Of a DNA stretch of 64,000 nucleotides, positions 19,019 through 60,974 are shown in pieces. Source of the DNA: Mobula birostris (taxonomy: Eukaryota); NCBI RefSeq assembly GCF_030028105.1, contig NC_092374.1:176786057-176850056 (forward strand), given 5' to 3'. The stretch's first letter is position 1. The number at the start of each line of letters is the position of its first letter. Below the pieces are notes generated by a model, which was not told the DNA's origin, did not search any database, and was given only the letters and a program-made list of their open reading frames with translations. The position numbers were made by a program, and so were the translations under genes.

Positions 19019-19236
19019 CTAATTGTCAGCGCTGAGGAAGCCTTTGTCTCTCCTGGTCACAACAGTACACTGTTGATCATGGTTGATTTCAGCAGGTCCT
19101 TGCTGGTTACTCAGAGGTTTGCTGTAATTCTTCTTCCTCCAGAAGCCAATTCCAATGATGATCCCGAGGAGAATGAGTGGAATGATTGCAACTCCAGCCA
19201 CAGTTACTGTCTTTGTATCTTTCTTTGTTGTCCTCT
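19019..19236 (-). CDS. MHC-I-like exon 5: connecting peptide, transmembrane helix, cytoplasmic tail and stop
   Basis: Acceptor ttctctatgtatccacag, phase 1. Encodes [35 protein letters not shown], stop-transfer RKK and a tail ending at TAG 19021-19019. Confidence 0.88.
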
Positions 19237-22200
19237 CTGTGGATACATAGAGAATATTTCAATTTTTTTGATAACCACTTTGTAACATTTTATTATCTGC
19301 ATTAAACTTGTACTGTTCACATCAAGTTATAATGTAATTTAGACATAGATACAGAAAATATAGAAACATACAAAATCTACAGCAGAATACAGGCCTTTTG
19401 GCCCACTATGCTGTGCCAAACATGTACTTACTTAGAAACTACCTAAGGTTACCCATAGCCCTCTATTTTTCTCAGCTCCAAGTACCTATCCAAGAATGCC
19501 TATGATCTTCTGCAGAGCTATGTTTAAAATAAATCAATGTAAAAACTTTTAAGTTCATATTAACATTGAGACATCATTTACAACTTCGGGTAGGATTGTG
19601 GCATGAGTGAAAGTAATTGCTTCTTGGGGGCCAAGAAAAGATATCTTTTTCTTTGTAAAATTTGCTTTTAACAATCCAAAGACAATTTTACTCCAAGAAT
19701 TTTGAGTACTGCAGGGCTACTCCATCAGTGAACTACTCATTGATCACAATAGCTGCACTGCTGTTGGAAGTGGCGTAAGCTGAGATATTGCAGGGACCGA
19801 CTGGATGTGGGAGAAGGAGCCAGTTGAGATATCAGGAAAGGAGATGATCAAGATGTTAGAGGAGCCAGTTTCGGTATGAAAGAGCTGACCTGGCTGAAGA
19901 CCGTGTTCCTGTCTGCTACTTGGAAGCATCGGAATTAGTTCAATATAACCGTGGGAGATTGTCTTGGTCATTTCATTTGCAATCACAAGACGCTGATCAA
20001 CAGTGATAATTTAAGTTGCCACAGGCCTGTTACCCTTGCCATGATGGAATGGTGGAACAGACCTGATAGGCCAAATGGCCTTTCTCTATAGTCTTATGGT
20101 CTAAACCAGAACATCCCAAATATAGCCATCAGCATTTGCCTCGCTGTTGACCTGGCTCCATGGCTGTAGCCTATTGCCAGTCTCTTTATAGAAACATAGA
20201 AACAGTGAAAAAACCTACAGTACAATACAGGCACTTTGGCCCACAAAGTTGTGCCGAACATGTCCCTGCCTTAGAAATTACGAGGCTTACCTATAACCCT
20301 CTATTTTTCTAAGCTCCATGTACATATCCAAAAGTCTCTTAAAGGACCCCATTGTATCCACCTCCACCACGGTTGCTGGCAGTCCATTCCATGCACTCAC
20401 CACTCTCTGAATAAAAAACTTACCCCTGACATCTCCTCTGTACCTGCTCCCCAGCATCTTAAACTGGTGTCCTCTTGTGGCAACCATTTCAGCCCTGAGA
20501 AAAAGCCTCTGACTATCCACATGATCAGTGCCTCTCATCATCTTATACTCCTCTATCAGGTCACCTCTCATCCTCCGTCGCTCCAAGGAGAAAAGGCCAA
20601 GTTCACTCAACCTACTTTCATAAGACATGCTCCCCAATCCAGGCAACATCCTTGTAAATCTCCTCTGCACCTTTTCTATGGCTTCCAAATTCTTCCCGTA
20701 GTGAGGTGACCAGAACTGAGCACAGTACTCCAAGTGGGGTCTGACCAGGGTCTTATATAGCTGCACCATTACCTCTCAGCTCCTAAATTCAATCCTACGA
20801 TTGATGAAGGCCAATACACTGTACACCTTGTCAACCACAGAGTCAACCTGTGCAGTTACTTTGAGCGTTCTATGGACTCGGACCTCAAGATCCCTCTGAT
20901 CCTCCACACTGCCAAGAGTCTTAACATCAATATTATATTCTGCCATCACATTTGACCTACCAAAATGAACAACGTCACACTTATCTGGGTTGAACTCCAT
21001 CAGCCACTTCTCAGCCTAGTTTTGCATCCTATCAATGTCCTGCTGTAACATCAGACAGTCCTCCACAATATCCACAACACCTTCAAGCTTTGTATCATCA
21101 GCAAACTTACTATCCATTTCCTCCACTTCTTCATCCAGGTCATTTATAAAAATCAAAAAGAGTAAGGGTCCCAGAACAGATCCCTGAGGCACTCCACTGG
21201 TGACCGACCTCCATGCAGAATATGACCCATCTATGACCACTCTTTGCCTTCTATGTGCAAGCCAGTTCTGGATCCACAAAGCAATGTCCTCTTGGATCCC
21301 ATGCCTCCTTACTTTCACAATAAACTTTGCATGGGGTACCTTATCAAATGCCTTGCTGAAATCCATATACACTACATCTACTGCTCTTCCTTCATCAATG
21401 TGTTTAGTCACATCCTCAAAAAATTCAATCAGGTTCGTAAGGCACGACCTGACAAAGCCATGTTGATTATTCCTAATTATATTATACATCTCTAAATGTT
21501 CATAAATCCTGCCTCTCAGGATCTTCTCCATCAACTTACCAACCACTGAGGTAAGATTTACTGGTCTATAATTTCCTGGGCTATCTCTACTCCCTTTCTT
21601 GAATAAAGGAACAACATCCACAACTCTCCAATCCTACGGAACCACTCCCCTCCCCATTAATGGTGCAAAGATCATCGCTGGAGGCTCGGCAATCTCCTCC
21701 CTCACCTCCCACAGTAGTCTGGGGTACATCTCATCCAGTCCCGGCAACTTATCCAACTTGAAGCTTCCGAAAATCTCCAGCACATCCTCTTTCTTAATAT
21801 CTACGTGCTCAAGCTTTTCAGTCTGCTGCAAGTCATCACTACAATCACCAAGATCCTTTTCCACAGTGAATACTAAAGTATTCATCAAGTACCTGTTCTA
21901 TTTCCTTCAGATCCATACTCACGTCCTCACTGTCACACTTGATAGGTCCTATTCTTTCATGTCTTATCCTTTTGCTCTTCACATACTTGTAGAATGCCTT
22001 GCAGTTTTCTTTAATCCTTCCTGCCAAGGCGTTCTCATGGCCCCTTCTGGCTCTCCTAATTTCCTTCTTCAGCTCCTTCCTATTCGCCTTATAATCTTCT
22101 AGATGTCTAAAATTACTTAGCTCTTTGAACCTTTTGTAAGCTTTGCTTTTCTTCTTGACTAGATTTATTACAACATTGTTACACCATGGTTCCTGTACCT

Positions 22201-25200
22201 TACTATAACTTCCCTGTCTCATTGGAACATACCTATGCCGACCTCCACACAAATATCCTCTGAATATTTGCCACACTTCTTCTGTAGTTTTCCCTGAGAA
22301 CATCTGTTTCCAACTTAAGCCTCCAATTTCCTGCCTGATAGTCTCATAATTCTCCTTACTCCAATTAAGCGCTTTTCTAACTTGTCTTTTCCTATCTCTC
22401 TCCAATGCTATTGCAAAGGAGATAGGATTATGATCACTATCTCCAAAATGCTTTCCTACTGAGAGATCTGACACCTGACCAGGTTCATTTTCCAATACTA
22501 AATCAAGTACAGCCTCTCCTCTTGTAAGCTTATCTACATATTGTGTCATGATACCTTCCTGAACAGACCTAACAAACACCACCCCATCTAAACACCTTGA
22601 TCTAGGGAGATGCCAATCGATATTTGGGAAATTAAAGCCTCCCATCACGACAACTCTGTTATTACTACATTTTTCCAGGATCTGTTTCCCTATCTGTTCC
22701 TTGAAATCCCTTTTACTACTGGGCAGCCTATAAAAAAACCCAGTAAAGTTATTGACCCCTTCGTGTTCCTAACCTCCACCCACAGAGACTCCATAGACAA
22801 TCCCTCTACAGTGTCCAACTTTTCTGCAGCCGTGACACTATCTCTGATCAACAGTGCCACACCCCTACTTCTTCTGTCTCCCTCCCTGTCCTTTCTGAAA
22901 CATCTAAAACCCGGCACTTGAAGTAACTGTTCCTGTTCCTGAGCCATCCAAGTCTCTGTAATGGCCACCACATTGTATCTCCAAGAACTGATCCACACTC
23001 TAAGTTCATCCACTTTGTTCACAACACTCCTTGCGTTAAAATAGACGCAGCTCAAACCTTCGGTCTGAGCGTATCCCTGCTCTATCACCTGCCTATCCTC
23101 CCTCTCACACTGTCTACCAGCTTTCTCTATTTGTCAGCCAACCTCCTCTTCCCCAGTCTCTTCAGTTCAGTTCCCAATCCCCAAAAATTCTAGTTTAAAC
23201 TCTCCCCTGTAGCCTTAGCAAACCTCCCCACCAGCATATTGGTCCCCCTGGGATTCAAGTGCGACCTGCCTTTTTTGTACGGGTCACACCTGCCCCAAAA
23301 GAGGTCCCAATGATCCAGCAATCTGATTCTCTGCCCCCTGCTCCAATCCCTCAGCCACACATTTATCCTACACCTCATTCTATTCCTATTCTCACTGTCG
23401 CGTGCCATAGGCAGTAATCCCGAGATTACTACCTTTGTGGTCCTGCTTCTCAACTTTCTTCCTAACTCCCTGTAGTCTTTTTTCAGGACCTCTTCCCTTT
23501 TCCTACCTATGTCATTGGTACCAATATGTACCACAACCTCTGGCTGTTCTCCCTCCCACTGCAGGATATCTTGGACGCAATCTGAAATATCCCAGACCCT
23601 GGCACCTGGGAGGCAAGCTACCATCCTAGTTTTATTCCTGCATCCACAGAATCGCCTGTCTGACCCCCTAACTATAGAGTCCCCTATCACTACTGCCTTC
23701 CTCTTCTTTTGCCTACCCTTCTGAGCCACAAGGGCAGACTCTATGCCAGAGGCACATCCACTGTCGCTTCCCCCAGGTAGGCTGTCCCCGCCGTCAGCAC
23801 TTAAACAGGAGAACTTATTGTCAAAGGGGTACAGCCACAGGGGTACTCTTTAGTACCTGACTCTTCCGCTTCTCCCTCCTGACTGTGACCCACTTGTCTG
23901 TCTCCTGTGGCCCCGGTGTGACCAACTGCCTATAACTCCTTTCTATCACCTCCTCGATCTCCCTGACCGGGTGAGGGTCATCGAGCTGCATCTCCAGTTC
24001 CCCAACTCAGTCTCTTAGGAGCTGCAGCTCGACACACCTGGTTCAGATATGGCTGTCCAGGAGACTGGGAAACTCCAGGACCTCCCGCATCTGGCACCAT
24101 GCATACTTCCTCCTTTCCACAAATAACACAGGTAAACCTACCTCTACTTACCGACCCTTGTCTGGTGGTGGGATAGAAGACATGGAAGTTGTGTGGCCTT
24201 GGTTCTAGTGAGGGCTAGGTTTCAAGCCTTGGGCTTGCCTGCTACTGCAGACCAGGGGAGAACCGTGGCATCTATGCTCGGCTGGGACTTGGCCCCTTCC
24301 ATTGCTGCTGTTCGTCCATGTTTGAGAGGTGGAATGACAGGCTAGATTGCATGCATCTGCATGCTGTCGGGACGCTGTACCATGATTGCCGGACTTTGTC
24401 GCTAAGGTTCTTGAACTATATACATGTTTTTTTGAATGAATGTGCTTCTTCACTGGCTATGTTGAATCATGTTACTTACTCTTTTGAATGCTTGCTTGCT
24501 ATCATGAATGCTTTGTACATTGGCCCCAGAGGAATGCTGTCTCATTCGGCTGTATCTATGTATGGGTTGAATGATGATTAAACTTGATTTGATTTGATTT
24601 GAACAGAAACAGTTTTGCTATCACTGGCATAGATGAGGTGAAGTTATCAGCAGCAACACAGCATATAAACATAAAATTGCTTTAATTTACAAAAAAAAAT
24701 GCACAGTGCAAAAAAGAAGAATAATGGGGTAGTGTTCATGGGTTGATGGACATTTCAGCAATTTGGTAGTGGAGGGGAAGGAGATGTTTTTGAATCACTG
24801 AGTGTTGGTCTTCAAGATTATGTACCTCATCCCCAATGGTAGGAACAAAAATAGAGCATCTCCAGGGTAATTAAAATTTCAGAGAAACAAACAAGTACCA
24901 GAAATATATAGATTAGTGTTCAGTTGTGAAGTCAATAAAGATATTTCCTTCTTATGTTTTTGGACTGCAAAGAAATTTACTAAAACAAATGGAAATAAAG
25001 AAGTTTATAACTATAAGACTTCAAAAGCTTTAAGCTCTGTTGACACATTGCAATTCGGTGGTCTCTCTCTCCCTCTTTCCCTCTCTCTCTCCTTTCTTTC
25101 TTCCCTCATTCTGTATCTGTCTATCTCTTACATAAACACACACATGGATAAAGTTACAATCAGTTTGTACTGATCAGCTATCTTCAGAACATCAGAAGGG

Positions 25201-28200: not shown

Positions 28201-31200
28201 CCACATGGCTTTAGACCACCTGGACAATACTAACACCTACTTCAGTGTGCTGTTCATCCACTATAGTTCAGCATTTAATACTATCATTCCCATAATCCTG
28301 ATTGAGAAGTTGCCTGGGCCTTTGTACCTCCCTCTGCAATTGGATCCTCGACTTCCTAACTGGTAGACCACAATCTGTGTGGATGGTTATTAGCATATCC
28401 TCCTCACTGACAATCAACATCAGCGCACATCAGGGCCGTGTGCTTAGCTCACTGCTCTGCTCTATATACAGATGACTGTATGGCTAGGGATAGCTCGAAT
28501 ACCATCTATAAATTTGCTGATGATACAACCATTGTTGGTAGAATCTCAAGAGGGCATACAGGAGTGAGATATGCCAACTAGTGGAGTGGTGCTGCAGCGA
28601 CAACCTGGCATTCAATGTCAGTAAGACGAAAAAGCTGATTGTGGATTTCAGAAAAGGTAAGACGAAGGAACACATACTAATCGACATAGAGGGATCGGAA
28701 GTGGAGAGAGTGAGCAGTTTCAAGTACCTGGGTGTCAAAATCTCAGAGGATCTAACCTGGTCTCAACAAATTGATTAAGTTATAAAGAAGGCATGATGCG
28801 GCTATACTTTATTAGAAGCTTGAAGAGATTTGACATGTCAACAAATACACTCAAAAACTTCTATAGATGTACCGTGGAGAGCTTTCTGACAGACTGCATC
28901 ACTGTCTGGTATGGAGGATGGGGGACGGGGGATGGGGGATGCTACTGCACAGGAGTGAAAGAAGCTGCAGACGGTTGTAAATCTAATCAGCTCCATCTTG
29001 GGTACTAGCCTACAAAGCATCCAGGACATCTTCAGGGAGCAGTGTCTCAGAAAAGCAGCGTCCAATATTAAGGACCTCCAGCACCCAGGGCATGCCCTTT
29101 TCTCACTGTTACCATCAGGTAGGAGGTACAGAGCCTGAAGACACACACTCAGTGATTCAGGAACTGCATCTTCCCCTCTGCCATCCAATTCCTAAGCGGA
29201 CATTGAATCCTTGGACACTACCTCACTGTTTTTAGCATACAGTATTTCTGTTATTTGCAAGTTTTTTTTAATCTACTGTAATTGATTTACTTGTTTATTT
29301 ATTATTATAATTACTTTTTTTTCTCTTCTGGATAATGTATTGTATTGAACTGCTGCTGCTAAGTTAACAAATTTTGTGTTGCACGCTGATGATATTAAAC
29401 CTGATTCTGATTCTGATTCTGTGAGGCAGTAACTAGTCTAGAAGTGCTAATATATTAGGTCAGGAAGCACTGCATCAAGAAAGCAGCATATGTCATCCAA
29501 TATCCCTGCCATCCGGTTCATGCCTTATTCTTCCTAATAGCATCAGGCAGGAGTTACAGAGCCTGTTGCTCCACACCATAAGGTTGAGGAACAGCTGCTT
29601 TCCTTCAGTCATCAGGTTTTTGAATTGAACTGTGCAACCTTAAGCTACATCAACAACAGAACACTGACCACCTCTCCCATTAGCATAGACTTGCTTCTGA
29701 TTGTGTTTTTCCTGATTGTCTTGCACAGTCTTTGTTTTTTTCTCTTCACTGTATTGTACAATTTGTAAATTAATCATATTCTGAATGTTGGCTGAATCTA
29801 TGTGCCCGGCATGCTGCTGCAAGCAGGTTTTTTATTGCACCTGTATGTCACTGTACTTCTGTATGTGAAAATAAACTTGACTTGATGTGTATTAACATTC
29901 TGTTATTTGTCTGGCATTTCGTATTCCACAGAATATCATTATTCCTGACCAATTAGAAATTAAGCAGTACATATGAAAACATGTGTTTTAAGGCTCTTAA
30001 TGTATTCTGCATTGTTGCTTGCCCCAAGTGATCAGCCTGAAGCAACAACAAGGATCTCTGACTTGCCACTTACCCTGTGGTATATTGAGTCCCTGCAGGA
30101 GGGTGGCATGCTCGATGTAACAGGAGTATTTTGCCCCCTCAGCTTCATTCAGTGTAATCATTTTCATCACCTGATAAGTCCCATCATGGTTGGGTAATAC
30201 ATCACTGGATCCAATCTCGGGGACCCACTCACCATCTCTCAGCCATGAAACATCGATAGCCTGTGGGTAGAACCCTGTGACAAGGCAGGAGAGTCTCAGC
30301 GGTTGAAATCCATCACTCCTAATACTGATAAACACTTCAGGGATTGCTACAAATGTAAAGAGTATCAACATCAGTGAAAATATGAAAAAACAGTTTTAGT
30401 TGTGACATCAATTCTACTCCCCTCTCTTCCAACTAGAGTTTATCTCAGTGTACCCAAAGCACCTTTTCACCAGTGTCACTATTTACTGAGGGTTTGCCTA
30501 TCCCTGGTGTTGTGGAAGATAGGCCTGGCAGCATTATCCATAACATTTCGGTCTGCTGGACATTGGTACTCTACTTGTCCTTTGTTAAGAACACTTCCAG
30601 GTAAACACCTTTGACCACAGTTACATCAGGTAGTGGTCAGCATGAGACTTCCTTCAGGTACTATGACATAGGGACACTGGATAAGATAATGTTGTTCCCT
30701 GACCGTCCAGATCTTCTGGTGGAATGTCTCATTACCAAATCTCACCACTGAGCAATAAGACAGTGCTTGGCTGGCAGTGAGAAGGACAATCTCAGTCAGA
30801 TACTCTCTGTACAGATGTCATATCATCCCCAATACCTGCTGCTCTCAGGATACCTGTGGTGGGAAGTATCTGGTCACCCACCTTTGTCCAGATTTGCTAG
30901 GAGGGAATAGGGAAGAATGCAAAAGTCTCTGTTCTGGTTCATTCCCAGCAGTTGCATAACAGAGGGCTGTCTGATCTACAGAGCGTTTCCAGGGTCACAT
31001 ATCAAGAAAGACTCTGCTGAATGACAGCACTAATTATTTTAAGAGATAAGTCAAGAAAAATATCTTTAATTAGAATACTGTTAGAATTACTCGCAATTTA
31101 AGCAGCATTCCAGCCAAATGATTTTGCTGCATTTAAATGAGGCAATGTAAGACAATTACAAACTTAACTGGATGCCTTAGCAAGGTAAGAGTCCTTCGAT

Positions 31201-34200
31201 GGGTGCAATCTGTTTTGCTTTTAGATTTGCTTTGTTCCTACATTTAGATTAGATTATAAGGACACTCAGTCCTCATTTATTGTCATTTAGAAATGCATGC
31301 ATGCATTAAGAAATGATACAATGTTCCTCCAGAGTGATATCACAAAAAAAAAACAGGACAAACCAGGGAACAACACTGACAAGACCACATAATTATAACA
31401 CATAGTTACAGCAGCAGTTAACCATTTAGACAGTTAAGTAGGGAGTTGAATTAGTAAATTACTTTAAAGTCATTTGAAGTCTTTTCAACTTATTGGGTTG
31501 TTTCATTTCACCTGCAAAAAGAGGACCTCCCCAGTGGAATTCAAGACTAAGCTGCCTACTCCTCTTTGAGCCAAATTACTTCATCTGTTTTATGTATTAA
31601 TTCATTTAGTATGGCTGTCGGTCTATGAGCTAATACGACCACGCATCCTGAACTAATATTAACATACACAATTGGATTGGGGACTGGTGCAGAATTCATT
31701 CCTCATAAGCATTTCTAACCCGTCTGCCTTATCTAATGGGTACATTGTCAGCTCTCTCATTGATTTCCTGTCAATGAACAATTGTTTAAGGGACAGCTCT
31801 TGATCTCACAATTTACCTCATTGTATTTCACTATATTTTATTCAGAGTTTGAAGAGATTTGATTTGGCACCTAAAACACTCAAAAACGTCTATAGATGTG
31901 CCGTGGACAGCATTCTGACAGTCTGCTTCACTGTCTGTTATGGGAGTGCTTCTGCTGAGGATCAAATAGAGCTACAGGAATCTGTAAACTTCTTGAGCTC
32001 CATCTTGGGTACCAGCCTCCATAGTATCCAAGTCATCTTCAAGAAGCAGTGCCTCAGAAAGGTGACACCCACTATTAAGGACCTAATCACCCAGGGACTG
32101 CCCTCTTCTCATTGTTATTATCAGGAAGGAGGTACAGAAGACTGGCGGCACACATTCAATGTTTCAGCAACAGCTTTTTTTCCCCTCTGTGATATGATTC
32201 CTAATTGTACATTGAACCTATGAACACCAACTCACTTTTTAAAAATATGCATTATTTCTGCTTTTGCACTATTTTTAATCTATTCAATATACATATATAT
32301 GCTCACTGTAATTGATTTACTTGTTTATTTATTTACTCATTCTTTATTTATTATCATTTGTTGCATTGTACTGCTGCTGCTAAGTTATCAAATTTTATGA
32401 CACATGCTAGTGACAATAAATCTGACTCTGATTCTGATTATGGCCCATACACTTCATTTGTTTATTTGCTCTGCTCTCTCTCTGTAACTGTAACTGCAAC
32501 AATATATTATGCATTTCATTCTTTAAGGTTGTCACAGTTGGAGCGGTAGTGGTGATAAGCTCTTACTAACTATTAGATGCTCCCATTGGCATGCATCTCA
32601 AATAGTCTCTGACAAACAAATTCTTCTCCTGGCCTTTATGTGGGATAAAGCTAAAATTCCAGCAGAACTGTTTCTACCGTCAGGAGAAAGGTGGGTTGCT
32701 GGCATCTTAAAACTAGTCACTTTGGCAGATGTCAGCCTTGGTTGACAGCTCACCTAGGAGAAGTAAAACTCTGATCTCCAACCTCTGCTGCCTTGTGGCT
32801 AGATTCACTCTTGGGGAAGGTTTTGGGAGTAATTCGTGAGGAAATATCCAGAGCTGGTCCCTAAGGCAGTGTGATGTTGAGTTCTAAACTGACTGGCAAC
32901 TCCTGCAATGCTGTTGGTTCCAAGCTGTATCAGTCTCTGCCATTCCTTGAAATTTAAGAGACTGCTAGACAGGTAAATGGAGGAATTTAAGATGGGGGTA
33001 ATATGGGAGGCAGGGTTTGAGGGTCGGCACAACATTGTGAGCCGAAGGGCCTGTACTGTGCTGTACTATTTTATGTTCTATGTTTACAGTTTTGTGTATC
33101 ACCTAGTCACTTAGAATGCAATATCCATGGTCAAATCCCCAACCAACAGAGGACCTGTATTTTGTATTTGATTAGTTCTTTTCTCTTTATACTATCTCAA
33201 TATACTAATGTTTGAGATGATCTGCATGGATGGCAAGCAAAATATTTTTTGTCCAGAGTATGTGACAATAATACTCCAGTTAACAATTACCTGAGGTTTG
33301 CCACATTTCTCACCTGGGCTATCTGGAGTATTTCCCCTGTACCCAACATTCAGAGTACCCAGGTATTATACCTCTCTGCCGTAGCGCTTCTTGCCCACAC
33401 TCAAGATATATCAGCAGCCACTTCACACAGTCCTTCTCCAAGAGAGCTTTGAAGTATTTGTTCATGAGCATGTTGACGTTCCACCGATCTGCAAGCACTT
33501 GGAACTGTGGATTTAGCACAATCCAACTCATTGCTTCCTTGTCAAAAACACATGCATCTTCGCCATCGTAGCCCAGTCTTATGAACCCATCTGTGGAGTT
33601 ATCATTCTTCAATTCACAGCCGCAAACCCCCTGGACAAAGAAATCAGCTGGGACTGAGGGAAGGGTAGGGGGGAAGAGGCAAGTGAAAAATAAACTGATG
33701 TGGCATGTAGGCATATAAGAAAGTAGAAGCATGAGTATCTCTTCTATTTTGTGCACGTCTACCCTAAACCCATCATCCTGCAGCCCCAGAAGCAATAGGG
33801 TTTCTCTTGGCTTCACCTACCACCCCACCTGCCTCCACGTCCAGCACATAATTCTCCATAACTTCCACCATCTCCAACAGGATCCCACATCCAAGAACAT
33901 CTTTCCCTACACCTATCCCCCTCGACTTTCTGCTTTCCACAGGAATCACTCCATATGCAACTCCCTTGTCCATTCGTCCCTCCCCACCGATCTCCCGCCT
34001 GGTACTTATCCTTTCAAGTGGAATAAGTGCTACACTTGCCTCTAGACTTCCTCCCTCACTACCGTTCAGGGCCCTAAACAGTTTTTTTCCAGGAGCAACG
34101 ACACTTCAGCTGTGAGTTTGTCGTGCCCATCTCCTGTGTCCAGCACTCCCAATGTGGCCTCCCACCCGATGTAGATTGGAAGATTGCTTCGCCGAGCACC

Positions 34201-37200: not shown

Positions 37201-40200
37201 GCTGCCCCAGCACAATTCCCACAGATTTGATGCAAAATAACATATTTCACTGTGTGTTCCACTGCACATGTGACAAATAAAACTGATCATTTAATCTTAA
37301 TCCATTCACTCATTGCAGCTGTTGTGACAAAGGCTAGACCTTATAAGAGACCATCACCTGCTAACTGGGTGTGCAGTGATAAGGACACATTAAACTAAAA
37401 AGATAAGGCTTTGACTTCATGCAAGTCCATCTGTACAGTCATTGGGTTTTGTTAGGTCACTTACCACTGTGCTGTTGGTAAACAATCTCAACATTCCCTC
37501 TGATTATCCCATGAAAACCTGCCACTGTGATTGCTATTGCATCCCAGTGTTCACTCGGGAAAGAGTAAGCCATCCACCATTGTCTGGGAACAGCCCTATG
37601 CAGCGTACTGTCAAAGTACACTATCTGCTGGTCATCCAGCGTTGCCACCATGCTATATTCAGTCAGCTCACTCCTTCTGTGGTTCAACAAGTAGTAAAAT
37701 GCAAGGCTGTGAAAATCTGCAATATAGAAACACAAATTAGTGATGCAAAGTGATGTGAAATTAGTTATGTGTCACTCTGGGTTTTCAGCATCTACAGAAT
37801 ATCTTGTGTTGGTGATGTAAAGACCACAATGCAGAAAGGCATTAATTAATATTAAAACTGATTACAACTTAGGAACATTGGATCCAGGGTATGTCAGGTG
37901 GTTCTTAGGCCGTGTCCACCAATCATGATTCCACTTCTAAATGATCTGCATTAACATACTATACATTTGCCTTTTTGCAATGTCTCCATCTTGAAAAATC
38001 TGTCCATCTTAGTCATTCATGTGTTCATCTATTAAACATTTCTCTGGTTAATGTTTTACGAATTTTACTTTACCCACCACCCTTTCCAAGCCATTAATAC
38101 TCATTTCAATCCCCTCCCCTTCCCAGTTGCATCCATCCATTCATTTACCTCACCAACTCTCTCTTTCCCCAGCTGCTCCTGGTTTCATATGTCCTTCACC
38201 TCCCTCATAATGGTTCCACAATCATCTTCCTGACTTATCAGATCTCAGCACTTCTATCCATTTTTCTTTATAATTATCAACCTCCATGGTCTTTACCTTA
38301 GCCTCACCTCACCTCCCCCTTCCTGGCTTCATCTTTCTTTTCTCTATTGCCTTTCATCCATCATGTAAACAACTCTTGTCTTCTGACTCCATACTCACCC
38401 TCCCCTACGCTGAACCTTCTGCCCATTATCTTTTATCTCCAAACTCGCCCTTTGCCCAATACACCATAATGTCTTGCTTCACTAATCTCTGTATCGATCC
38501 TTCCTCTTCATTTTATGAGTTATCTCCCTCCTTTCATCACCAATTCCTTTCCCATGACAGATGCTTGTCAAACTGCTCAGTTCTTCCAGCAGACAGTTAC
38601 TCCAGATTCTGGTACCTACTGTCTCTTGTGTCTCATCAGAATATTAAGATGATATTTGGATATACAGTACTGTGCAAAAGTCTTCAGAAAATATATATAC
38701 ATATATGGCTAATTGGTTGGCATTTATCTGTCTGGAAGGACAATGGGTGATGATGATCATCATCACAAGCATGTGCGGAAGGTATGGAGATCCTAAGATG
38801 CCCAGTCATTAAGGTCACCCTCTCAGCCTCACCAGCATAGTCCAAAGGAAAGTTTATGAAGCAACACTTAGCTTGCACAGGAGAGTTTGGAGATAATCTA
38901 TCAGAGTTACAGGGAAGTAATCAGTCCTAAGTTGCAGAGGTGAGTAGCAGGGTGACTGTCAGAAGAAATAGAAATGTGAATAGGCATTTAGCGCAGAGCA
39001 TCCCTATGGCCGTTCTTTTCAATAATAAGTAAACCACTTTGGATACTGCTGTGGGGGATGACCTCCCAGGAGAATGCCATGGAGACTGGTTTACTGGCAC
39101 TGAGCATACGTCCATTATGCAGAACTGAAAGAGGGAGAAGAGGGTAGTGGTAATGATAGGGGGTTCAACAGTCAGGGGAACAGACAGGAGATTCCATGGA
39201 GATGAACAGTACACTAAAATGGTATGTTGCCTCCCTGGTGCCAGGATCATGGACATCTTGTGTCATGTCCACAGCATTCTGGAGAGGGAGGGAGAGTAGC
39301 CAGATGTTTTGGTACATATTGGTACCAGTGACAGAGGAAGGAAAAGAAAAGAGGTCCTGAAAATATAATTTAGAGAGCTAGGTAGAAAGTGGATAAACAG
39401 GACCAACAGCATAGTAATTTCTGGATTACAGCTTGTGCCACACACCAGTGAGGGGAGAAACTGGATGATTTGGTAGATTATTGTGTGGCTGAGAAGCTGA
39501 TGCAGAGGGAAGGGCTTCAGGTTCTTGGATCTTTAAGATCTCTTCTGGAGGAGATATGACCTGTTCAGAAGTGAAGGGTTGCACTAGAACCGAAGGAGGA
39601 CTACTATTCTCACCAGCAGGTTTATTAGAGCTGTTGGAGGGGTTTTAAACAAAATTGTTAGGGAGGTGGGAACCAGAGTGAAGGACTCAGGATAGGATAG
39701 ATGGTAAAAAAGCAAAGTTTGCATGCAATCAGTCTGTCAGGAAGGGCAGACAAATGATAAGATGAAATTGCAGCCGGCAGGGAGAGTATCAGTGCATTAG
39801 GGATGTAGAATCGAAAAGCGTAGCAAATACAGAATTCAAAGTGTTATATCTCAATGCACAGAGTATAAGAAAAAAGGTAGATATCTTGTTGCACTATTAC
39901 AGATAGTCAGGTATGATGTTGTGGCCATCACTGACTCGTGGCTAAAGGGTGGTTGCAGTTGGGAGCTGAATCTCAAAGGTTACACATTGTATCAGATGGA
40001 TAGGAAGGTAGGCAGAGGGGGTGGCATGGCTTTGCTAGTAAAGAATGGCATCAAATCAGTGAAAAGCTGTGAAATAGGATCAGAAGATGTTGAATCCTTG
40101 TGGGTTGAGTGAAGAAATTGCAAGGGTAAAAGGACTTGATGGCAGTTCAGTACAGGCCTCCAAACAGTAGCTGAGATGTGGACCACAGATTACAATGGGA

Positions 40201-46200: not shown

Positions 46201-46992
46201 AGAAAGGAGTGACCATAGCGATGAGCGGGTGAAATAGGCTATTGCCTCAGATCCTGACACCCTGTCTTTTCAGTTTTTCTGAGCCGACATTTAAATTGAC
46301 CCAATAATGGAAGAGCAAAAGGCTCCAACGTAGAGCGGAGTGGAGAATAGAGTGAACATTGCAAGAATGAATGAAATTGGCTCTCGCTCCACTCAGCACC
46401 CAGAACAATCCAAAATGGCACCTGGGCCGCTGTACGAGCATCAGAATTCCACTGTCCCAGCGTCTCCTGTCCAAATGGCTGGCTCACTGCATCTACATTG
46501 ATTCTGCAACGTACTTTCTCAGCTCATCCCCAGATCTTGCCTTGTCATCACCTGCCTGCTGACTGTTTGCAGCAATAATTTAACACTATTTACCTCAGAA
46601 ACGACGTTCTTAGATGTTTTTAGTCAAATTTATTGCCTTTTCAACTACCAGTGAGCTGTCACACATGTTCGATAGAGCCACCTTAACTGGAAATGGTATT
46701 CTGTTGTACTTGTGTTGCAACTTACATTGTATTCTTTTCTGTTCCTCAGCGTAATACAAAAATATCTGTAATACAACTTCTCACAAGGTCTTTACAGCAG
46801 CACAGGGATCGCTGTTTCTCTCAATCATTCATACACTTAAGACAGTGACCCAGTAAAAACTAAGGGACTGCTCAACAATATATTAAATTTGCAACTGCAA
46901 TAAATCTTTGTGGTTCCTTTAAAGAAGTTAAGTTACTTACCGGAAGAGACTGTGGCTACACAGTAAATGTTCAGTAAAGTAAAAAGCAGCAT
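19019..46992 (-). CDS. Nonclassical MHC class I heavy-chain-like gene, 5 coding exons, 1071 nt CDS, 356 aa. Domains: leader [17 protein letters not shown]; alpha1 DFHSLAFYY...VYQQHS; alpha2 [11 protein letters not shown]...EALRQR; alpha3 AIPEV...NIPQ; CP/TM/CYT ERTTKK...LSADN
   Basis: Exon lengths 52+252+276+273+218=1071 nt join in one open frame through four phase-1 GT-AG introns. Class I motifs are present: HSL.F, LDD.Q..YFDS, PRQ.W, E.W, Q...GC, GYDG.D, W133, RW, DC..WL..YL, C1-set [25 protein letters not shown] and YSC.IEH. I cannot assign a lineage (UBA/UCA/UDA/UEA or other) without a tree, so no symbol is given. Confidence 0.93.
20188..24097 (-). mobile_element. Near-full-length CR1 LINE in MHC intron 4, same strand as the gene; ORF1 SGNH/GDSL-esterase-like and ORF2 EN-RT; frameshifted
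   Basis: ORF1 23190..23729 ([18 protein letters not shown]); EN 22690..23088 and 21845..22648; RT 21016..21621 ([25 protein letters not shown]); C-terminus 20287..20769; (catagaaa)n tail. Confidence 0.95.
26670..27030 (+). mobile_element. CR1 LINE 3' end
   Basis: gaaaggtcttgatagagtgg...ggaatttctttagcccaagggtgtgaatc...atgggccaaatggactaactctg. Confidence 0.78.
28060..29420 (+). mobile_element. Rex1/Babar-like LINE, RT plus 3' end, disrupted
   Basis: MKWFERQVM...LDPLQF; [13 protein letters not shown]; KFADDT; [19 protein letters not shown]; tail ending (tctgat)n. Confidence 0.78.
30074..30346 (-). CDS. MHC-I-like exon 4, alpha3 Ig C1-set domain (91 codons)
   Basis: Acceptor ctctttacatttgtag; donor G|GTAAGT; C1-set motifs [22 protein letters not shown] and YSCYIEH; lies inside ORF 29997..30371. 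Confidence 0.96.
31830..32440 (+). mobile_element. Rex1/Babar-like LINE 3' end in MHC intron 3
   Basis: ORF 31849..32223 [21 protein letters not shown]; same tail as the 28060-29420 copy. Confidence 0.72.
33372..33647 (-). CDS. MHC-I-like exon 3, alpha2 domain (92 codons; alternative in-frame acceptor at 33653)
   Basis: 276 nt, the typical alpha2 exon size; C101-C164 equivalent pair; acceptor cccag after a long pyrimidine tract; donor AG|GTATAA; lies inside ORF 33319..33816. Confidence 0.94.
33740..34810 (+). mobile_element. Penelope-like element 3' part (RT thumb/linker, GIY-YIG C-terminus, pLTR), ~90 bp from the alpha2 acceptor
   Basis: TYHPT...[13 protein letters not shown]; PPGTYP...KCYTC; [21 protein letters not shown]...[23 protein letters not shown]; then a pyrimidine-rich pLTR. 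Confidence 0.82.
36491..36654. repeat. Penelope-pLTR-derived hairpin (55-bp arms, 51/55 complementary, 54-nt spacer)
   Basis: 36491-36545 agcaacacacacaagatgctggaggaactcagc...ctatggaa is the reverse complement of 36600-36654, with 4 mismatches. Confidence 0.9.
37465..37716 (-). CDS. MHC-I-like exon 2, alpha1 domain (84 codons)
   Basis: Acceptor ctaatttgtgtttctatattgcag with a CTAAT branch-point-like motif; donor G|GTAAGT; lies inside ORF 37457..37735. Confidence 0.95.
38930..42580 (+). mobile_element. Degenerate near-full-length CR1 LINE (second subfamily) in MHC intron 1, antisense to the gene
   Basis: Esterase-like ORF1 remnants at ~39130-39620; EN 39921..40112; RT 41035..41571 ([24 protein letters not shown]); 41608..41847; 3' end ~42560. 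Confidence 0.88.
42590..42960 (-). mobile_element. Interspersed repeat resembling an RTE-clade 5' region; related copy at ~32700-32940 (+)
   Basis: Shared core aaggc(t)(t/a)(c/t)gggagtaa...aaatccagag...ctggca(g/a)ctcctgca. Clade assignment is tentative. Confidence 0.4.
43483..43553. mobile_element. Tiny Tc1/mariner-like MITE (28-bp TIRs, 23/28 match, 15-bp core); a solo TIR of the same family at ~38663-38685
   Basis: tacactactgtgcaaaagtcttaggcac ... gtgcataagacattttcacagtactgtg. Confidence 0.7.
44385..44930 (-). mobile_element. CR1 LINE 3' end
   Basis: ORF 44732..44923 [29 protein letters not shown]; CR1 3' UTR. Confidence 0.8.
46941..46992 (-). CDS. MHC-I-like exon 1, signal peptide [17 protein letters not shown]
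   Basis: ATG at 46992-46990; 17 hydrophobic codons plus one G, then the consensus donor GTAAGT (46940-46935). Phase 1 matches exon 2 (G+AT = Asp). Confidence 0.88.
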
Positions 46993-47064
46993 GCCTTAAA
47001 TGAGGTCAGGGCATTTATTAACCAGGTGACTAACAGCAGTAACAGTAACTTGATCTCTTGTGCA

Positions 47065-47192
47065 TTTTAACAGAACTCTGGCGTGGAGCTACTTATTGGT
47101 CCGGGTGTATAGCAAACCTGATAACCGCATCCAATGGGAATGAAAGGGATGGTTCTGGTCACTAATTACCAGTCAATGGAGTCTGAGGATCC
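47065..47192 (-). promoter_or_regulatory. Putative class I core promoter with an SXY-like module
   Basis: On the minus strand: GGATCCT (47192-47186, S-like, weak), CTGGTAAT (47172-47165, X1-like), TGACC (47161-47157, X2-like), a 21 nt spacer, ATTGG (47135-47131, Y box), CCAAT (47099-47095) and TTAAAA (47070-47065, TATA-like). The TATA-like element ends ~70 nt upstream of the ATG. Confidence 0.65.
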
Positions 47193-47889
47193 GAATTTAC
47201 ACCGGCATTACAGAACAACATTCATGTCAACTACTCTTCCCAGAGCATTTTAAAGACGAAGAAGTGCTTTACCAAGTGTAATTACTTTGCCAAGCACAAT
47301 GCCATCAATTCTACAAACGGAGCTTTGCGATTAACAGGAATATCTTCCTTCGTGTACTGCTTGAGAAATATTTATGAATCAAGATGTTACAAAGAATTTC
47401 CTTGTTATTCTTTGATGTAGCATCATGGCATCTTTCTATCAGATGAGAGGACAGACGGGAGCTCAGGTTAAAATTTTATCCAGGTGTAAAAGTGTAGATA
47501 TCAGCCAATACTGCCTCACCCTCAGTACATGATCCGATTTACACTGGTATTTACAGAACAACATTCATCTCAGCTACTCTTCCCACAGCACGTTAAAGAC
47601 AAAGAAGTGCTTTACACTTTAAAGACAAAGAAGTGTAAATATTTAGACAGGCACAATGCCATCAACTCTACAAACAGAGTTTTGGGATTAACAGGAATAT
47701 ATCTTCTTTAGAGTACTGCTTGAGAAATATTTATGATTCAGGATGTTGCAAGGAATTTCCCTGTTATTCTTTGATGTAGTGTCATGGCATCTTTCTGTCA
47801 GATGAGAGGACAGACGGGAGCTCAGGTTAAAATTTTATCAAGGTGTAAAAGTGTAGATATCATCCAACACTGCCTCACCCTCATTACAT
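47188..47889. repeat. Two-copy tandem duplication immediately upstream of the promoter (47188-47530, 343 bp; 47531-47889, 359 bp)
   Basis: Both copies begin gatccga(a)tttacac and share acagaacaacattc, gcacaatgccatcaa, tactgcttgagaaatatttatga and cagatgagaggacagacgggagctcaggttaaaattttatc. Copy 2 has an internal repeat of taaagacaaagaagtg. Confidence 0.95.
47752..47761 (-). promoter_or_regulatory. Possible NF-kB site GGGAAATTCC
   Basis: Exact match to the kB consensus GGGRNNYYCC, 760 bp upstream of the ATG. A 10-mer match can arise by chance. Confidence 0.3.
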
Positions 47890-47954
47890 GGATTTCTCAA
47901 TGATCCTTATACTGATTACTGGGCAGATTCAGATTCTGATAGGCTTATTATCAT

Positions 47955-53160: not shown

Positions 53161-55350
53161 AACCAGAGAACCATAGAACCATAGAAACTACAGCACAGAA
53201 ACAGGCCCTTTGGCCCTTCTTGGCTGTGCCGAACCATTTTCTGCCTAGTCCCACTGACCATATCACTCCTTACACCTCCCATCCATGTATCTGTCCAATT
53301 TATTCTTAAAGGTTAAAAAAGAACCCGCATTTACCACTTCGTCTGGCAGCTCATTCCATACTCCCACCACTCTCTGTGTGAAGAAGCCCCCCCTAATGTT
53401 CCCTTTAAACTTTTCCTCCCTCACCCTTAACCCATGTCCTCTGGTTTTTTTCTCCCCTTGCCTCAGTGGAAAAAGCCTGCTTGCATTCACTCTGTCTATA
53501 CCCATCATAATTTTATATACCTCTATCAAATCTCCCCTCATTCTTCTACGCTCCAGGGAATAAAGTCCTAACCTATTCAACCCTTCTCTGTAACTGAGTT
53601 TCTCAAGTCCCGGCAACATCCTTGTAAACCTTCTCTGCACTCTTTCAACCTTATTTATATCTTTCCTGTAATTTGGTGACCAAAACTGAACACAATACTC
53701 CAGATTCGGCCTCACCAATGCCTTATACAACCTCATCATAACATTCCAGCTCTTATACTCAATACTTCGATTAATAAAGGCCAATGTACCAAAAGCTCTC
53801 TTTACGACCCTATCTACCTGTGACGACACTTTTAGGGAATTTTGTATCTGTATTCCCAGATCCCTCTGTTCCACTGCACTCCTCAGTGCCTTACCATTAA
53901 CCTTGTATGTTCTACGTTGGTTTGTCCTTCCAACGTGCAATACCTCACACTTGTCTGTATTAAACTCCATCTGCCATTTTTCAGCCCATTTTTCCAGATG
54001 GTCCAAGTCCCTCTGCAGGCTCTGAAAACCTTTCTCACTGTCTACTAGACCTCCAATCTTTGTATCATCAGCAAACTTGCTGATCCAATTTACCACATTA
54101 TCATCCCGATCATTGATATAGATGACAACAAACAATGGACCCAGCACTGATCCCTGTGGCACACCACTAGTCACAGGCCTCCACTCAGAGAAGCAATTCT
54201 CTACCACCACTCTCTGGCTTCTTCCATCGAGCCAATGTCTAATCCAATTTACCACCTCTCCATGCATACCTAGCGACTGAATTTTCCTAACTAACCTCCC
54301 ATGCGGGACCTTGTCAAAGGCCTTACTGAAGTCCATGTAGACAATATCCACTGCCTTCCCTTCATCCACTTTCCTGGTAACCTCCTCGAAAAACTCCAAC
54401 AGATTGGTCAAACATGACCTACCACGCACAAAGCCATGTTGACTCTCCCTAATAAGCCCCTGTCTATCCAAATGCTTGTAGATTCTGTCTCTTAGTACTC
54501 CCTCCAATAACTTACCTACTACTGACGTTAAACTCACCGGCCTATAATTTCCCGGATTACTTTTCGATCCTTTTTTAAACGGAACAACGTGAGCCACTCT
54601 CCAATCCTCCGGCACTTCACCCGTAGACAGCGACATTTCAAATATTTCTGCCAGGGCCCCCGCAATTTCAACACTAGTCTCCTTCAAGGTCCGAGGGAAC
54701 ACTCTGTCAGGTCCCGGGGATTTATCCACTTTAATTTTCCTCAAGACAGCAAGCACCTCCTCCTTTTCAATCTGTACAGTTTCCATGGTCTCAGTACTTG
54801 ATTCCCTCAATTCCATAGATTTCATACCAGCTTCCTTAGTAAATACAGACGCAAAAAACCTATTTAAGATCTCCCCCATTTCCTTTGGTTCCGCACAAAG
54901 CCGACCACTCTGATCTTCAAGAGGACCAATTTTATCCCTTACAATCCTTTTGCTCTTAATATACTTGTAAAAGCTCTTTGGATTATCCTTCACTTTGACT
55001 GCCAAGGCAACCTCATGTCTTCTTTTAGCCTTCCTGATTTCTTTCTTTAAGTATTTTCTTGCACTTCTTATACTCCTCAAGCACCTGATTTACCCCCTGT
55101 TTCCTATACATTTCATACAACTCCCTCTTCTTCTTTATCAGAGTTGCAATATCCCTTGAGAACCAAGGTTCCTTATTCCTATTCAATTTGCCTTTAATCC
55201 TGACAGGAACATACAAACTCTGCACTCTCAAAATTTCCCCTTTGAAGGCTTCCCACCTACCAATCACATCTTTGCCAGAGAACAACCTGTCCCAATCCAC
55301 GCTTTTTAGATCCTTTCTCATTTCTTCAAATTTGGCCTTCTTCCAGTTCA
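53161..55350 (-). mobile_element. Young 5'-truncated CR1 LINE with an uninterrupted 605-aa RT/C-terminal ORF
   Basis: ORF 53263..55080 ([44 protein letters not shown]); one frameshift to 55025..55321; (aaccatag)n tail. Confidence 0.96.
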
Positions 55351-58010: not shown

Positions 58011-60787
58011 AGAAACAGAGAAAACATACAGCACAATACAGGCCCTTCAGCCCACAAAGCTGTGCTGAACATATCCCTCCCTTAGAACTACCTAGACTTT
58101 ACCCATAACCCTCTATATTTCTAAGCTCCATGTAGCCATACAGGAGTCTCTTAAAAGACCCTGTCATTTCCGCCTCCACCACTGCCACCGGCAGCCCATT
58201 CCACGCACTCAACACTCTCTTCATAAAAAACTTATTCCTGACATCTCCTCTGTACCTACTTCCAAGCACCTTAAAACTATGCCTTCTTGTGTTAGCCACT
58301 TCAGCCCTGGGGAAAAGCCTCTGACTATACACACGATCAACGTCTCTCATTATCTTGTACACTTCTATTAAGTCAACTCTCATCCTCTGTCAATCCAAGG
58401 AGAAAAGGCTGAGTTCACTCAACCTGTTCACATAAGGCATGCTCCCTAATCCAGGCAACATCCTTGGAAATCTCCTCTGCACTCATTCCATGGTTTCCAC
58501 ATTCTTTTTATAGTGAAGTGACCAAAACTGAGCACAGTGCTCCAAGTGAGGTCTGACCAGGGTCCTATATAGCTGCAACATTACCTCCTGGCTCTGAAAC
58601 TCAATCCCATGATTGATGAAGGCCAATGCACCATATGCATTCTGAAACACAGAGTCAACCTGCATAGCAGCTTTTAGTATCCTATGGACTCAGACCACAA
58701 GATCCCTCTGATCCTCCACACTACCAAGAGTCTTACTATTAATACTATATTTTGCCAACATATTTGACCTACCAAAATGAACCACCTCACACTTATCTGA
58801 GTGGAACTCCATCTACCACTTCTCAGCCCAGTTTTGCATCCTATCAATGTCCCGTTGTAACCTCTGACAGCCCTCCACATGATCCACAACACCCCCAACC
58901 TTTGTGTCATCAGCACATTTACTAACCCATGCCTCCACTTCCTCATCCAGGTCATTTATAAAAATCACAAAGATTAAGGGTCCCAGACCAGATCCCTGAG
59001 GCACACCACTGGTAACTGGTTTCCATGCAGAACATGACCTGTCTACAACCACTCTTTGCCTTCTATGGGCAAGCCAGTTCTGAATCCGTAAAGCAATGCC
59101 ATTGGATCCCATTCCTCCTTACTTTCTCAATAAGCCTTGCATGGGGTACCTTTTCAAATGCCTTGCTAAAATCCATATACACGACATCTATGGCTCTACC
59201 TTCATCAATGTGTTAAGTCACATCCTCAAAAATTCAATTAGGCTCATAAGGCTCGACCTACCTTTGACAAATCTATGCTGACTATTCCTAATCATGTTAT
59301 GCTTCTCCAAATGCTTATAAGTGCCTCTCAGGATTTTCTCCATCAACTTACCAATCACAGAAGTAAGACTCACTGGCCTATAATTTCCTGGGCTATCCCT
59401 AATCCCTTACTTGAATCAGGGAACAAAATCCGCAACCCTCCAATCCTCCCGTCCACACTGATGATGCAAAAATAATTGCCGGTGGCTTAGCAATCTCCCC
59501 CCTTGATTCCCACAGTTGCCTGGGGTACATCCCGTAGGGTCCTGGTGACTTATCCAACTTGATGCTTTCCAAAAGCTCCAGCACATCCTCTTTCTTAATA
59601 TCAACATCCTCAAACTTTTTCAGTCCACTGCAAGTCATCCTTACAATCACCAAGATCCTTCTCTGCAGTGAATGCTGAAGTAAAGTATTCATTAAGTACC
59701 TCTGCTATTTCCTCCGGTTCCATACACGCTTTTCCATTTTCACACTTGATTGGTGCTCTTCTCTCACATCTTATCCTCTTGCTCTCACATACTTGTTGAA
59801 TGCATTCAGGTTTTCCTTAAATCTGTCCGCCAAGGCCTTCTCATGGCCCCTTCTGGCTCTCCTAATTTCATTCTTAAGCTCCTTCCTGCTAGCCTTATAA
59901 TCCTCTGAATTCATATCATCACCTAGTTTTTTGCAACCTTTCATAAGCTTTTCTTTTCTTGACTGGATTTAAACAACCTTTGTGCAGCACAGAACTTGTA
60001 CCCTACCATCCTTTCCATGTCTCGTTGGAACGTACCTAGTCAGAACCCCACGCAAATATCTCCTGTACATTTGCAGGTTTCTTCAGTACATTTCCCTGAG
60101 AACATCTGTTTCCAATTTATGCTTCCAAGTTTCTGCCTGATAGACTCATAGTTCCCCTTACTCCAATTAAATATCTCCCCAACTTGTCTGTTCCTATCCC
60201 TCTCTAATGCTATGGTAAAGGTGATGGAATTGTGATCACTATCTCCAAAATGCTCTCCCACTGAGAGACCTGACACCTGACCAGGTTCATTTCCCAATAC
60301 CAAATGAAGTACAGCCTCTCCTCTTGTAGGCTTATCTACATATTGTGTCAAAAAACCTTCCAGAACACACCTAACAAACTCTATCCCATCTGAACACCTC
60401 ACTCTACGAAGGTACCAATCAATATTTGGGAAATTAAAATTTCCCACCACAACAACTCTGTTGTTATTACTCCTTTCCAGAATCTGTCTCCCCATCTGCT
60501 CCTCGATGTCCCTGATACTACTGGGTGGTGTATAAAAAACACCCAGTAGAGTTATTGACCCTTTCTTATTCCTAACTTCCACCCACAGAGACTCCATAGC
60601 CAACCCCTCCATGACTTCCTCCTTTTCTGAAGCCGTAAAATTATCTCTGATCAACAGTGTCACACCCCCACCTCTTTTGCCTCCCTCCCTATCCCTTCTG
60701 AAACATCTAAAGCCTGGCACTTCAAGTAGCCATTCCTGCCCCTGCACCAACCAAGTCTCTGTAATGGCCACAGCATCAGATCTCGAA
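58011..60787 (-). mobile_element. CR1 LINE ORF2 (EN to 3' end), 5'-truncated, frameshifted
   Basis: ORFs 60040..60822 ([25 protein letters not shown]), 58813..59112, 58483..58665 and 58099..58383. Confidence 0.9.
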
Positions 60788-60974
60788 GTCATGATCAATG
60801 AAGAATCATTTGATTCTGGCATGGCCCCAGAGGACTGGAAATTTGCAAATGTCAGTCCACTGATTAAGAAGGAAGGAAGTGAAAAGAAAGGAAATTATAG
60901 GCCAGTTAACCTAACCTCAGCGGTTGGCAAAGTGTTGTAGTTTATTATTTAGAATGAGGCTTTGGAGTACATAC

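Follow-up and report, generated by a model that had tools for sequence, protein, structure and literature searches.

The window analyzed here, a stretch of 64,000 nucleotides from the giant manta ray Mobula birostris, contains an MHC class I gene of five exons on the minus strand. The domains encoded by exons 2–4 were identified by searching the stop-free stretches of the minus strand against Pfam. Exon 1 (46941–46992) encodes a 17-codon hydrophobic leader from the ATG at 46992 plus one base; its last base, at 46941, leaves the exon in phase 1 and precedes a GTAAGT donor. Exon 2 (alpha1, 37465–37716) matches Pfam MHC_I and is flanked by AG/GT splice sites, exon 3 (alpha2, 33372–33653) matches MHC_I with an E-value of 1.9e-15, and exon 4 (alpha3, 30074–30346) matches the C1-set Ig domain with an E-value of 7.6e-17. 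The transmembrane and cytoplasmic region and the stop codon are encoded by exon 5 (19019–19236). All of the internal exon junctions are AG/GT, and translation of the intact spliced model gives a product of 358 amino acids with a single terminal stop.

The NCBI model for this gene in M. birostris (P0152, 319 amino acids) starts at an internal Met of alpha1, and its entire sequence recurs unchanged within the spliced product, at offset 39. The public model therefore lacks exon 1. The leader exon is real despite a first intron of 9.2 kb, because the N-termini of the orthologs from Pristiophorus japonicus and Heptranchias perlo, which read MLLVTLLNVYCVP(T/N)VSS followed by (A)D(Y/F)H, match the leader and its junction with exon 2. 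The leader exon thus corrects the public gene model. The Hypanus model P0154 likewise starts at an internal Met of alpha1 and misses the leader exon. The Pristis model P0151 has a 70-residue N-terminus that lacks a signal peptide, and the true leader exon is found inside the gene range (L002:12581). Long LINE-type retroelement frames, which are reverse-transcriptase/endonuclease-like, appear at 20290–23849, 53266–55089, 60043–60894, and elsewhere in the window; the flanks of the gene and its large introns, of 9.2 and 10.8 kb, are filled by them. Positions 2523–2717 consist of 195 consecutive N, either an assembly gap or a masked stretch.

Orthologs were searched for using the alpha2 exon as the query and subsequently the full-length sequence. 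One ortholog each was obtained in most of the 12 elasmobranch species matched, with extra partial matches in Leucoraja and Pristiophorus. Relative to classical ray and shark sequences, five of the eight residues that contact the peptide termini are replaced (Y7F, Y59H, T143L, K146R, and Y159L), and the encoded protein is 37% identical to the classical class I proteins of manta and sawfish. Judged from its predicted product, the gene is a nonclassical MHC class I gene, with a class I fold, replaced terminus-binding residues, and orthologs across taxa. It is probably a single-copy gene with one-to-one orthologs in rays and sharks. The first-pass annotation of this DNA, made from the letters of the window, had proposed an X1-X2-Y-CCAAT-TATA promoter array upstream of a nonclassical class I gene, and the assignment of the gene is borne out by these data.

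The motif array is located on the minus strand at 47192–47065, which is 73–200 nt upstream of the leader ATG at 46992 and on the same strand as the gene. All of the motifs quoted previously are present there: CTGGTAATTAGTGACC at 47172–47157, CCATTGG at 47137–47131, ACCAATAAG at 47100–47092, and GTTCTGTTAAAA at 47076–47065. The boxes of interest lie 143–195 nt upstream of the class I leader ATG in the sense orientation of a proximal promoter. A BLAST search with the manta promoter returned a single ortholog, situated upstream of the leader, for each of the loci from H. perlo (sevengill shark, L001), Pristis pectinata (sawfish, L002), Leucoraja erinacea (little skate, L003), and Stegostoma tigrinum (zebra shark, L004). 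The copy from L. erinacea is partial, ends just after the CCAAT box, and does not cover the S-X-Y portion; the counts of invariant columns given below thus refer to the four-species alignment of manta, sawfish, sevengill shark, and zebra shark.

The farthest upstream element in this array that is conserved is an S-like sequence, CTCAGACTCCA (47177–47187, minus strand), which lies 5 nt upstream of X1 and is invariant in 8 of 11 columns. The consensus is CA(G/A)ACTCC, and the form found in zebra shark, CAAACTCC, is the same 8-mer that is located 15 nt upstream of X1 in both of the classical modules of sawfish. The sequence proposed earlier as the S box, GGATCCT (47186–47192, minus strand), is common to manta and sawfish only and has no invariant columns out of seven; it does not belong to the conserved module.

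The X1-like box CTGGTAAT (47165–47172, minus strand) starts 11 nt before the TGAC of X2 and is invariant in 4 of 8 columns. The hexamer GGTAAT inside the manta X1 matches five of the six positions of the RFX half-site RGYAAC, and the corresponding GGTAAC of zebra shark is a perfect match. The forms of X1 among the orthologs are CTGGTAAT, CTGGTACT, CTGGGACC, and ATGGTAAC. The X2-like box TGACCAG (47155–47161, minus strand) follows X1 after 3 nt and is invariant in 5 of 7 columns. TGAC is exact and TGACC is invariant in the four species, versus TGACG for the CRE half-site. The Y box, an inverted CCAAT (ATTGG, 47131–47135, minus strand), follows 19 nt after X2 and is invariant in 4 of 5 columns. 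The pentamer is ATTGG in manta and sawfish and ACTGG in sevengill and zebra sharks. The spacer between X2 and Y is 19 nt in three of the species and 17 nt in zebra shark.

The sequence GGTTATCAG (47118–47126, minus strand) is positioned between Y and the forward CCAAT box, and all nine of its columns are invariant. On the other strand it reads TGATAA, a GATA-type motif; the consensus for GATA factors is WGATAR. The forward CCAAT box ACCAATAAGTAGCT (47087–47100, minus strand) is invariant in 12 of 14 columns, with CCAAT itself unchanged in the four species; in three of them (manta, sawfish, and sevengill shark) the box starts at −108 relative to the ATG. The TATA-like element TGTTAAAA (47065–47074, minus strand) is located 24 nt after CCAAT and is invariant in 6 of 10 columns. 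It includes TTAAAA at 47070–47065, 24 nt from ACCAATAAG, and the pair reproduces the CCAAT plus TATA-like arrangement of a class I core promoter. The core around the predicted start (47039–47064, minus strand) is invariant in 15 of 26 columns and contains tandem TTACTG motifs that are initiator-like. The near-invariant sequence in this segment is GC.CAAGAGAT.AAGTTACTGTTAC. Another conserved block, similar to CTGCTGTAAAAT, is found at 47200–47215, approximately 215 nt upstream of the ATG. Directly upstream of the promoter core there is a tandem duplication of approximately 345–360 nt (47208–47531 and 47551–47890), the copies of which are 87–92% identical; in sawfish, the corresponding sequence occurs once. 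Nothing relevant was found in Rfam.

The only colinear matches between manta and the two sharks across the 35 kb of the manta gene are the promoter with exon 1 and exons 2–4; the introns do not align. The promoter block (47187–46933) is 74.5% identical to that of Heptranchias and 67.8% identical to that of Stegostoma, compared with 69–77% for exons 2–4. Invariant columns make up 50–100% of the boxes versus 0–33% of the spacers. The spacer values are 0/4 for S to X1, 5/19 for X2 to Y, 5/17 for GGTTATCAG to CCAAT, and 2/10 for CCAAT to the TATA-like element. Relative to the ATG, the boxes of manta, sawfish, and sevengill shark all start at −195, −180, −169, −143, −134, and −108, and this stretch is thus free of insertions and deletions among these lineages, which have been separate since sharks and rays diverged. 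These identical distances argue that the promoter is real and constrained. On the strength of the alignment, the minus-strand segment 47187–47039 is the proximal promoter of the nonclassical class I gene, conserved from rays to sharks, and the difference between boxes and spacers at fixed spacing constitutes a typical phylogenetic footprint of a functional promoter.

The best conserved elements are GGTTATCAG, ACCAATAAGTAGCT, the S-like element, and TGACC, and X1 is the least conserved of the boxes. The alignment of orthologous promoters across sharks and rays had been suggested as a check of the original proposal. The box spacing is kept in three of the species and TGACC and CCAAT in all four, but X1 is variable, the Y position is ACTGG in sharks, and GGATCCT is not kept. 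A second copy of the promoter is found in Heptranchias at L001:13054–13291, in intron 1 and 3.3 kb downstream. This copy is 99% identical, has ACCAACAAG in place of CCAAT, lacks a leader exon, and has two possible origins, a recent duplication or an artifact of assembly.

The classical (GSHSLRY-type, UAA-type) class I promoters of sawfish and skate were used as the reference for SXY in place of HLA-A. The promoters from P. pectinata (L005:2640–2880) and L. erinacea (L007:2690–2890) each contain an ISRE (CACTTTCGGTTTC and CACTTTCGATTTC, respectively), two tandem X1-X2-Y modules, and a CCAAT box. In each of the four modules, CCRGMNAC is followed after 3 nt by TGAC and a further 3 nt, and then, beyond an 18-nt spacer, by ATTGG. 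One of the skate modules has a non-CRE X2, TGACTCC. The sequence ACCAATCAG is located 17 nt after the proximal module. These spacings agree with those of the mouse NLRC5 module, in which S to X is about 16 bp and X to Y is 20–22 bp, depending on how the boxes are delimited (PMC4374748). The design of the ray classical promoters, as read from the motifs, is strikingly similar to that of mammals, with the SXY unit duplicated. No paper was found in the literature on this combination of an ISRE, a duplicated SXY, and CCAAT in rays. For the classical class I gene of sevengill shark, no recognizable SXY was found within 700 nt, and a satellite-like repeat of about 46 nt lies directly upstream of the ATG (L006:2581–2940). 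This gene likely has an unannotated 5′ exon.

Orthologs of CIITA and NLRC5 have been described in the whale shark (PMC8455134). SXY is older than the split from bony vertebrates, as the first-pass annotation had argued, because exact X1-X2-Y modules are present in the classical genes of sawfish and skate and because the whale shark possesses CIITA and NLRC5. It is the classical genes that carry this argument. The ray classical promoters further indicate that jawed vertebrates inherited the ISRE-SXY-CCAAT design from their common ancestor.

Comparison of the manta promoter with these classical modules reveals a common framework. X1 starts 11 nt before TGAC in both, the gap between X1 and X2 is 3 nt, TGAC is exact, and ATTGG is present in the rays. 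The spacing from X2 to Y is 19 nt in manta and 18 nt in the classical modules. The order X1-X2-Y-CCAAT-TATA that had been proposed for the manta array is thus the order of the ray classical class I promoters, but the distance from Y to CCAAT is 30 nt in manta and 17 nt in the classical promoters, and the additional 13 nt hold GGTTATCAG. Neither this sequence nor a GATA-type motif is found in the classical ray promoters. The manta ACCAATAAG resembles the classical ACCAATCAG, with ACCAAT(C/A)AG in common and the same preceding GG in rays. The S-like element, CA(G/A)ACTCC or CAAACTCC, is also common to both, but it lies 5 nt from X1 rather than 15 nt. The shift is exactly 10 nt, or about one helical turn.

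The classical ray promoters differ from that of manta in being CpG-rich, in having an ISRE, tandem modules, and an exact CCRGMNAC for X1, and in lacking a TATA-like element. Their GC content is 0.61–0.63 with 43–51 CpG, whereas that of the manta nonclassical promoter is 0.40 with few CpG. Over 700 nt, the promoters of manta, sawfish, and sevengill shark are free of ISRE, kB, and GAS sites, and that of zebra shark has a single loose GAS-like site only. The absence of ISRE and kB sites noted originally therefore extends to the orthologs, and an ISRE is present in both of the ray classical promoters.

The similarity to SXY was evaluated against chance using the consensus CCRGMNAC N3 TGAC N3 N17–19 ATTGG, which was derived from the four ray classical modules only. 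The candidate has three mismatches to this consensus, all of them in X1 (5/8 match), with a 19-nt spacer. At three mismatches, the two strands of 64 kb would yield approximately 4 such hits by chance, and the resemblance in sequence is therefore not significant by itself; for any particular 250 nt on the correct strand, the corresponding figure is approximately 0.008. Pairs of CCAAT and ATTGG are common as well (6 found versus 7.8 expected). These numbers would allow the array to be a set of short motifs upstream of a gene with no regulatory meaning. The orthologs contradict such an explanation: the block is among the few noncoding sequences of the loci compared that are colinear between manta and sharks, its conservation is similar to that of exons, the boxes contrast with the spacers, and the spacing is fixed. 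The candidate is above chance because it lies directly upstream of a leader exon confirmed by orthologs and because its boxes, and not its spacers, are conserved in four elasmobranchs. Pure chance is accordingly very improbable. Another pattern, RGYAAY N2–4 TGAC N20–24 ATTGG, gave one hit versus 0.027 expected and was discounted, since it was constructed after the sequence had been seen. An alternative placement of the S-like element at the 15-nt spacing, with CCAGAAC as X1, was rejected; no TGAC follows and the spacing to Y fails.

The manta promoter cannot be classed as a canonical SXY module, given that 5 nt, and not 15–16 nt, separate its S-like element from X1 and that Y is not an inverted CCAAT in the sharks. 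We consider it likely that the promoter descends from SXY. The order S, X1, X2, Y, and CCAAT is that of the ray classical promoters, the register of X1 and X2 is identical, and the distance from X2 to Y is off by 1 nt. The overall explanation that we favor, and regard as probable, is a remodeled descendant of a class I SXY-CCAAT promoter. The remodeling would have moved S closer to X1 by 10 nt, lengthened the segment between Y and CCAAT by 13 nt with the gain of a GATA-type motif, allowed X1 to degenerate, and removed the ISRE, and Y would have been lost in the sharks.

The same data may be read as a promoter specific to this lineage, in which the likeness to SXY is a relic or partly coincidental. 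NF-Y would then act at CCAAT, a GATA-type factor at GGTTATCAG, and other factors at TGACC(A)GAAC and CA(G/A)ACTCC, with no role for RFX or for NLRC5/CIITA. Such a promoter would fit an old gene lineage in which the best conserved elements are GGTTATCAG, ACCAATAAGTAGCT, the S-like element, and TGACC and not X1 or Y. It would also fit the ACTGG found at Y in both sharks, the mismatches of X1 to the classical consensus at three of eight positions, the noncanonical spacing of S, and the missing ISRE. Nonetheless, four species retain both the X1-N3-TGAC register and the distance from it to Y, three of them with no insertions or deletions, ATTGG is exact in both rays, and the S-like 8-mer is common to the classical modules. 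A lineage-specific promoter is a substantial possibility that we judge somewhat improbable; descent from SXY would be consistent with it, and only present function distinguishes it from the remodeled SXY-CCAAT promoter.

For the remodeled SXY-CCAAT promoter the factors that may bind can be proposed from the motifs. NF-Y requires all five bases of CCAAT. The Y position is thus a possible NF-Y site only in rays, because it reads ACTGG in both sharks, and NF-Y binding at Y is by this prediction not a feature of the entire lineage. The forward CCAAT box is probably the main NF-Y site, located about 55 nt upstream of the predicted start of transcription. This start is placed near 47040 using the TATA-like TTAAAA only, and the TTACTG repeats look initiator-like. 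A GATA-type factor could bind at GGTTATCAG, and other factors could bind at the S-like element and TGACC. In rays it is conceivable, if somewhat doubtful, that X1-X2-Y remains able to assemble RFX together with an X2 factor and NF-Y, and hence to respond to NLRC5 or CIITA. Given that no ISRE is present, the gene would not be driven directly by IRF or interferon. A design that is non-CpG, TATA-like, and GATA-containing suggests an expression that may be restricted rather than ubiquitous. The original interpretation of the locus, in which an SXY enhanceosome would be retained on a nonclassical gene, is sustained in part: the nonclassical promoter, the order of the boxes, and the age of SXY stand, and the Y box in sharks, X1, and the proposed S box are weakened or not supported.

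A more extended scenario is offered as speculation, and we think it unlikely to hold in full. An elasmobranch-wide nonclassical lineage, possibly lipid-presenting, would have kept a rewired enhanceosome since approximately the shark-ray split, with S shifted by 10 nt, a GATA-type site inserted, and the ISRE deleted. A ubiquitous, interferon-driven promoter would thereby have become tissue-gated, perhaps with continued use of RFX and NF-Y together with NLRC5 or CIITA in rays, and the complete ISRE-SXY-CCAAT promoter would already have been present in the ancestor of jawed vertebrates. The alignment of orthologs provides a testable map of the constrained promoter elements in an old nonclassical class I gene, and it hints at the way in which a change in gene function can lead to the remodeling of a classical class I promoter.

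In mammals, SXY modules and their NLRC5/CIITA enhanceosome have been studied in detail, and they have also been noted in teleosts. No searchable paper was found that describes SXY or NLRC5-CIITA modules in cartilaginous fish. The mammalian SXY is bound by RFX5/RFXAP/RFXANK, CREB/ATF1, and NF-Y, and is used by NLRC5 (PMC4374748; PMC7281430). The manta promoter has in common with it that a class I leader exon is preceded, on the sense strand, by S, X1, X2, Y, CCAAT, and a TATA-like element in that order. A gap of 3 nt separates X1 from X2, the distance from X2 to Y is within 1 nt of canonical, and the inverted CCAAT is exact in two rays. It differs in that S is located at 5 nt rather than 15–16 nt, X1 is degenerate, X2 is TGACC rather than TGACG, and the ISRE and enhancer A are missing. 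Spacing is described as critical in the mouse targets of NLRC5, in which S and X are 16 bp apart (PMC4374748). In mammalian S-Y modules, conservation is highest in X and Y, and mutation of X abolishes activity (PMC1802633), whereas the orthologs examined here differ from one another in X1 and at the critical T of Y.

For the class I promoters of teleosts, W/S, X2, and Y motifs are mentioned in PMC7573153, which cites earlier work, and the interferon-gamma response in salmon appeared to be driven by IRF1 rather than by the enhanceosome (PMC7573153). The manta promoter resembles those of teleosts in having SXY-like motifs outside the tetrapods, and it does so without any ISRE. The mouse nonclassical genes H2-T10/T22 are occupied by NLRC5 with Y located 48 bp and S located 45 bp from X (PMC4374748). 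The manta class I gene is likewise nonclassical, and in its SXY-like module, too, S and Y are off the canonical distances. In manta, S is closer than canonical and the conserved CCAAT lies 54 nt beyond X2. Nonclassical genes with unusual spacing can be targets of NLRC5, because H2-T10/T22 are occupied with Y at a distance of 48 bp (PMC4374748).
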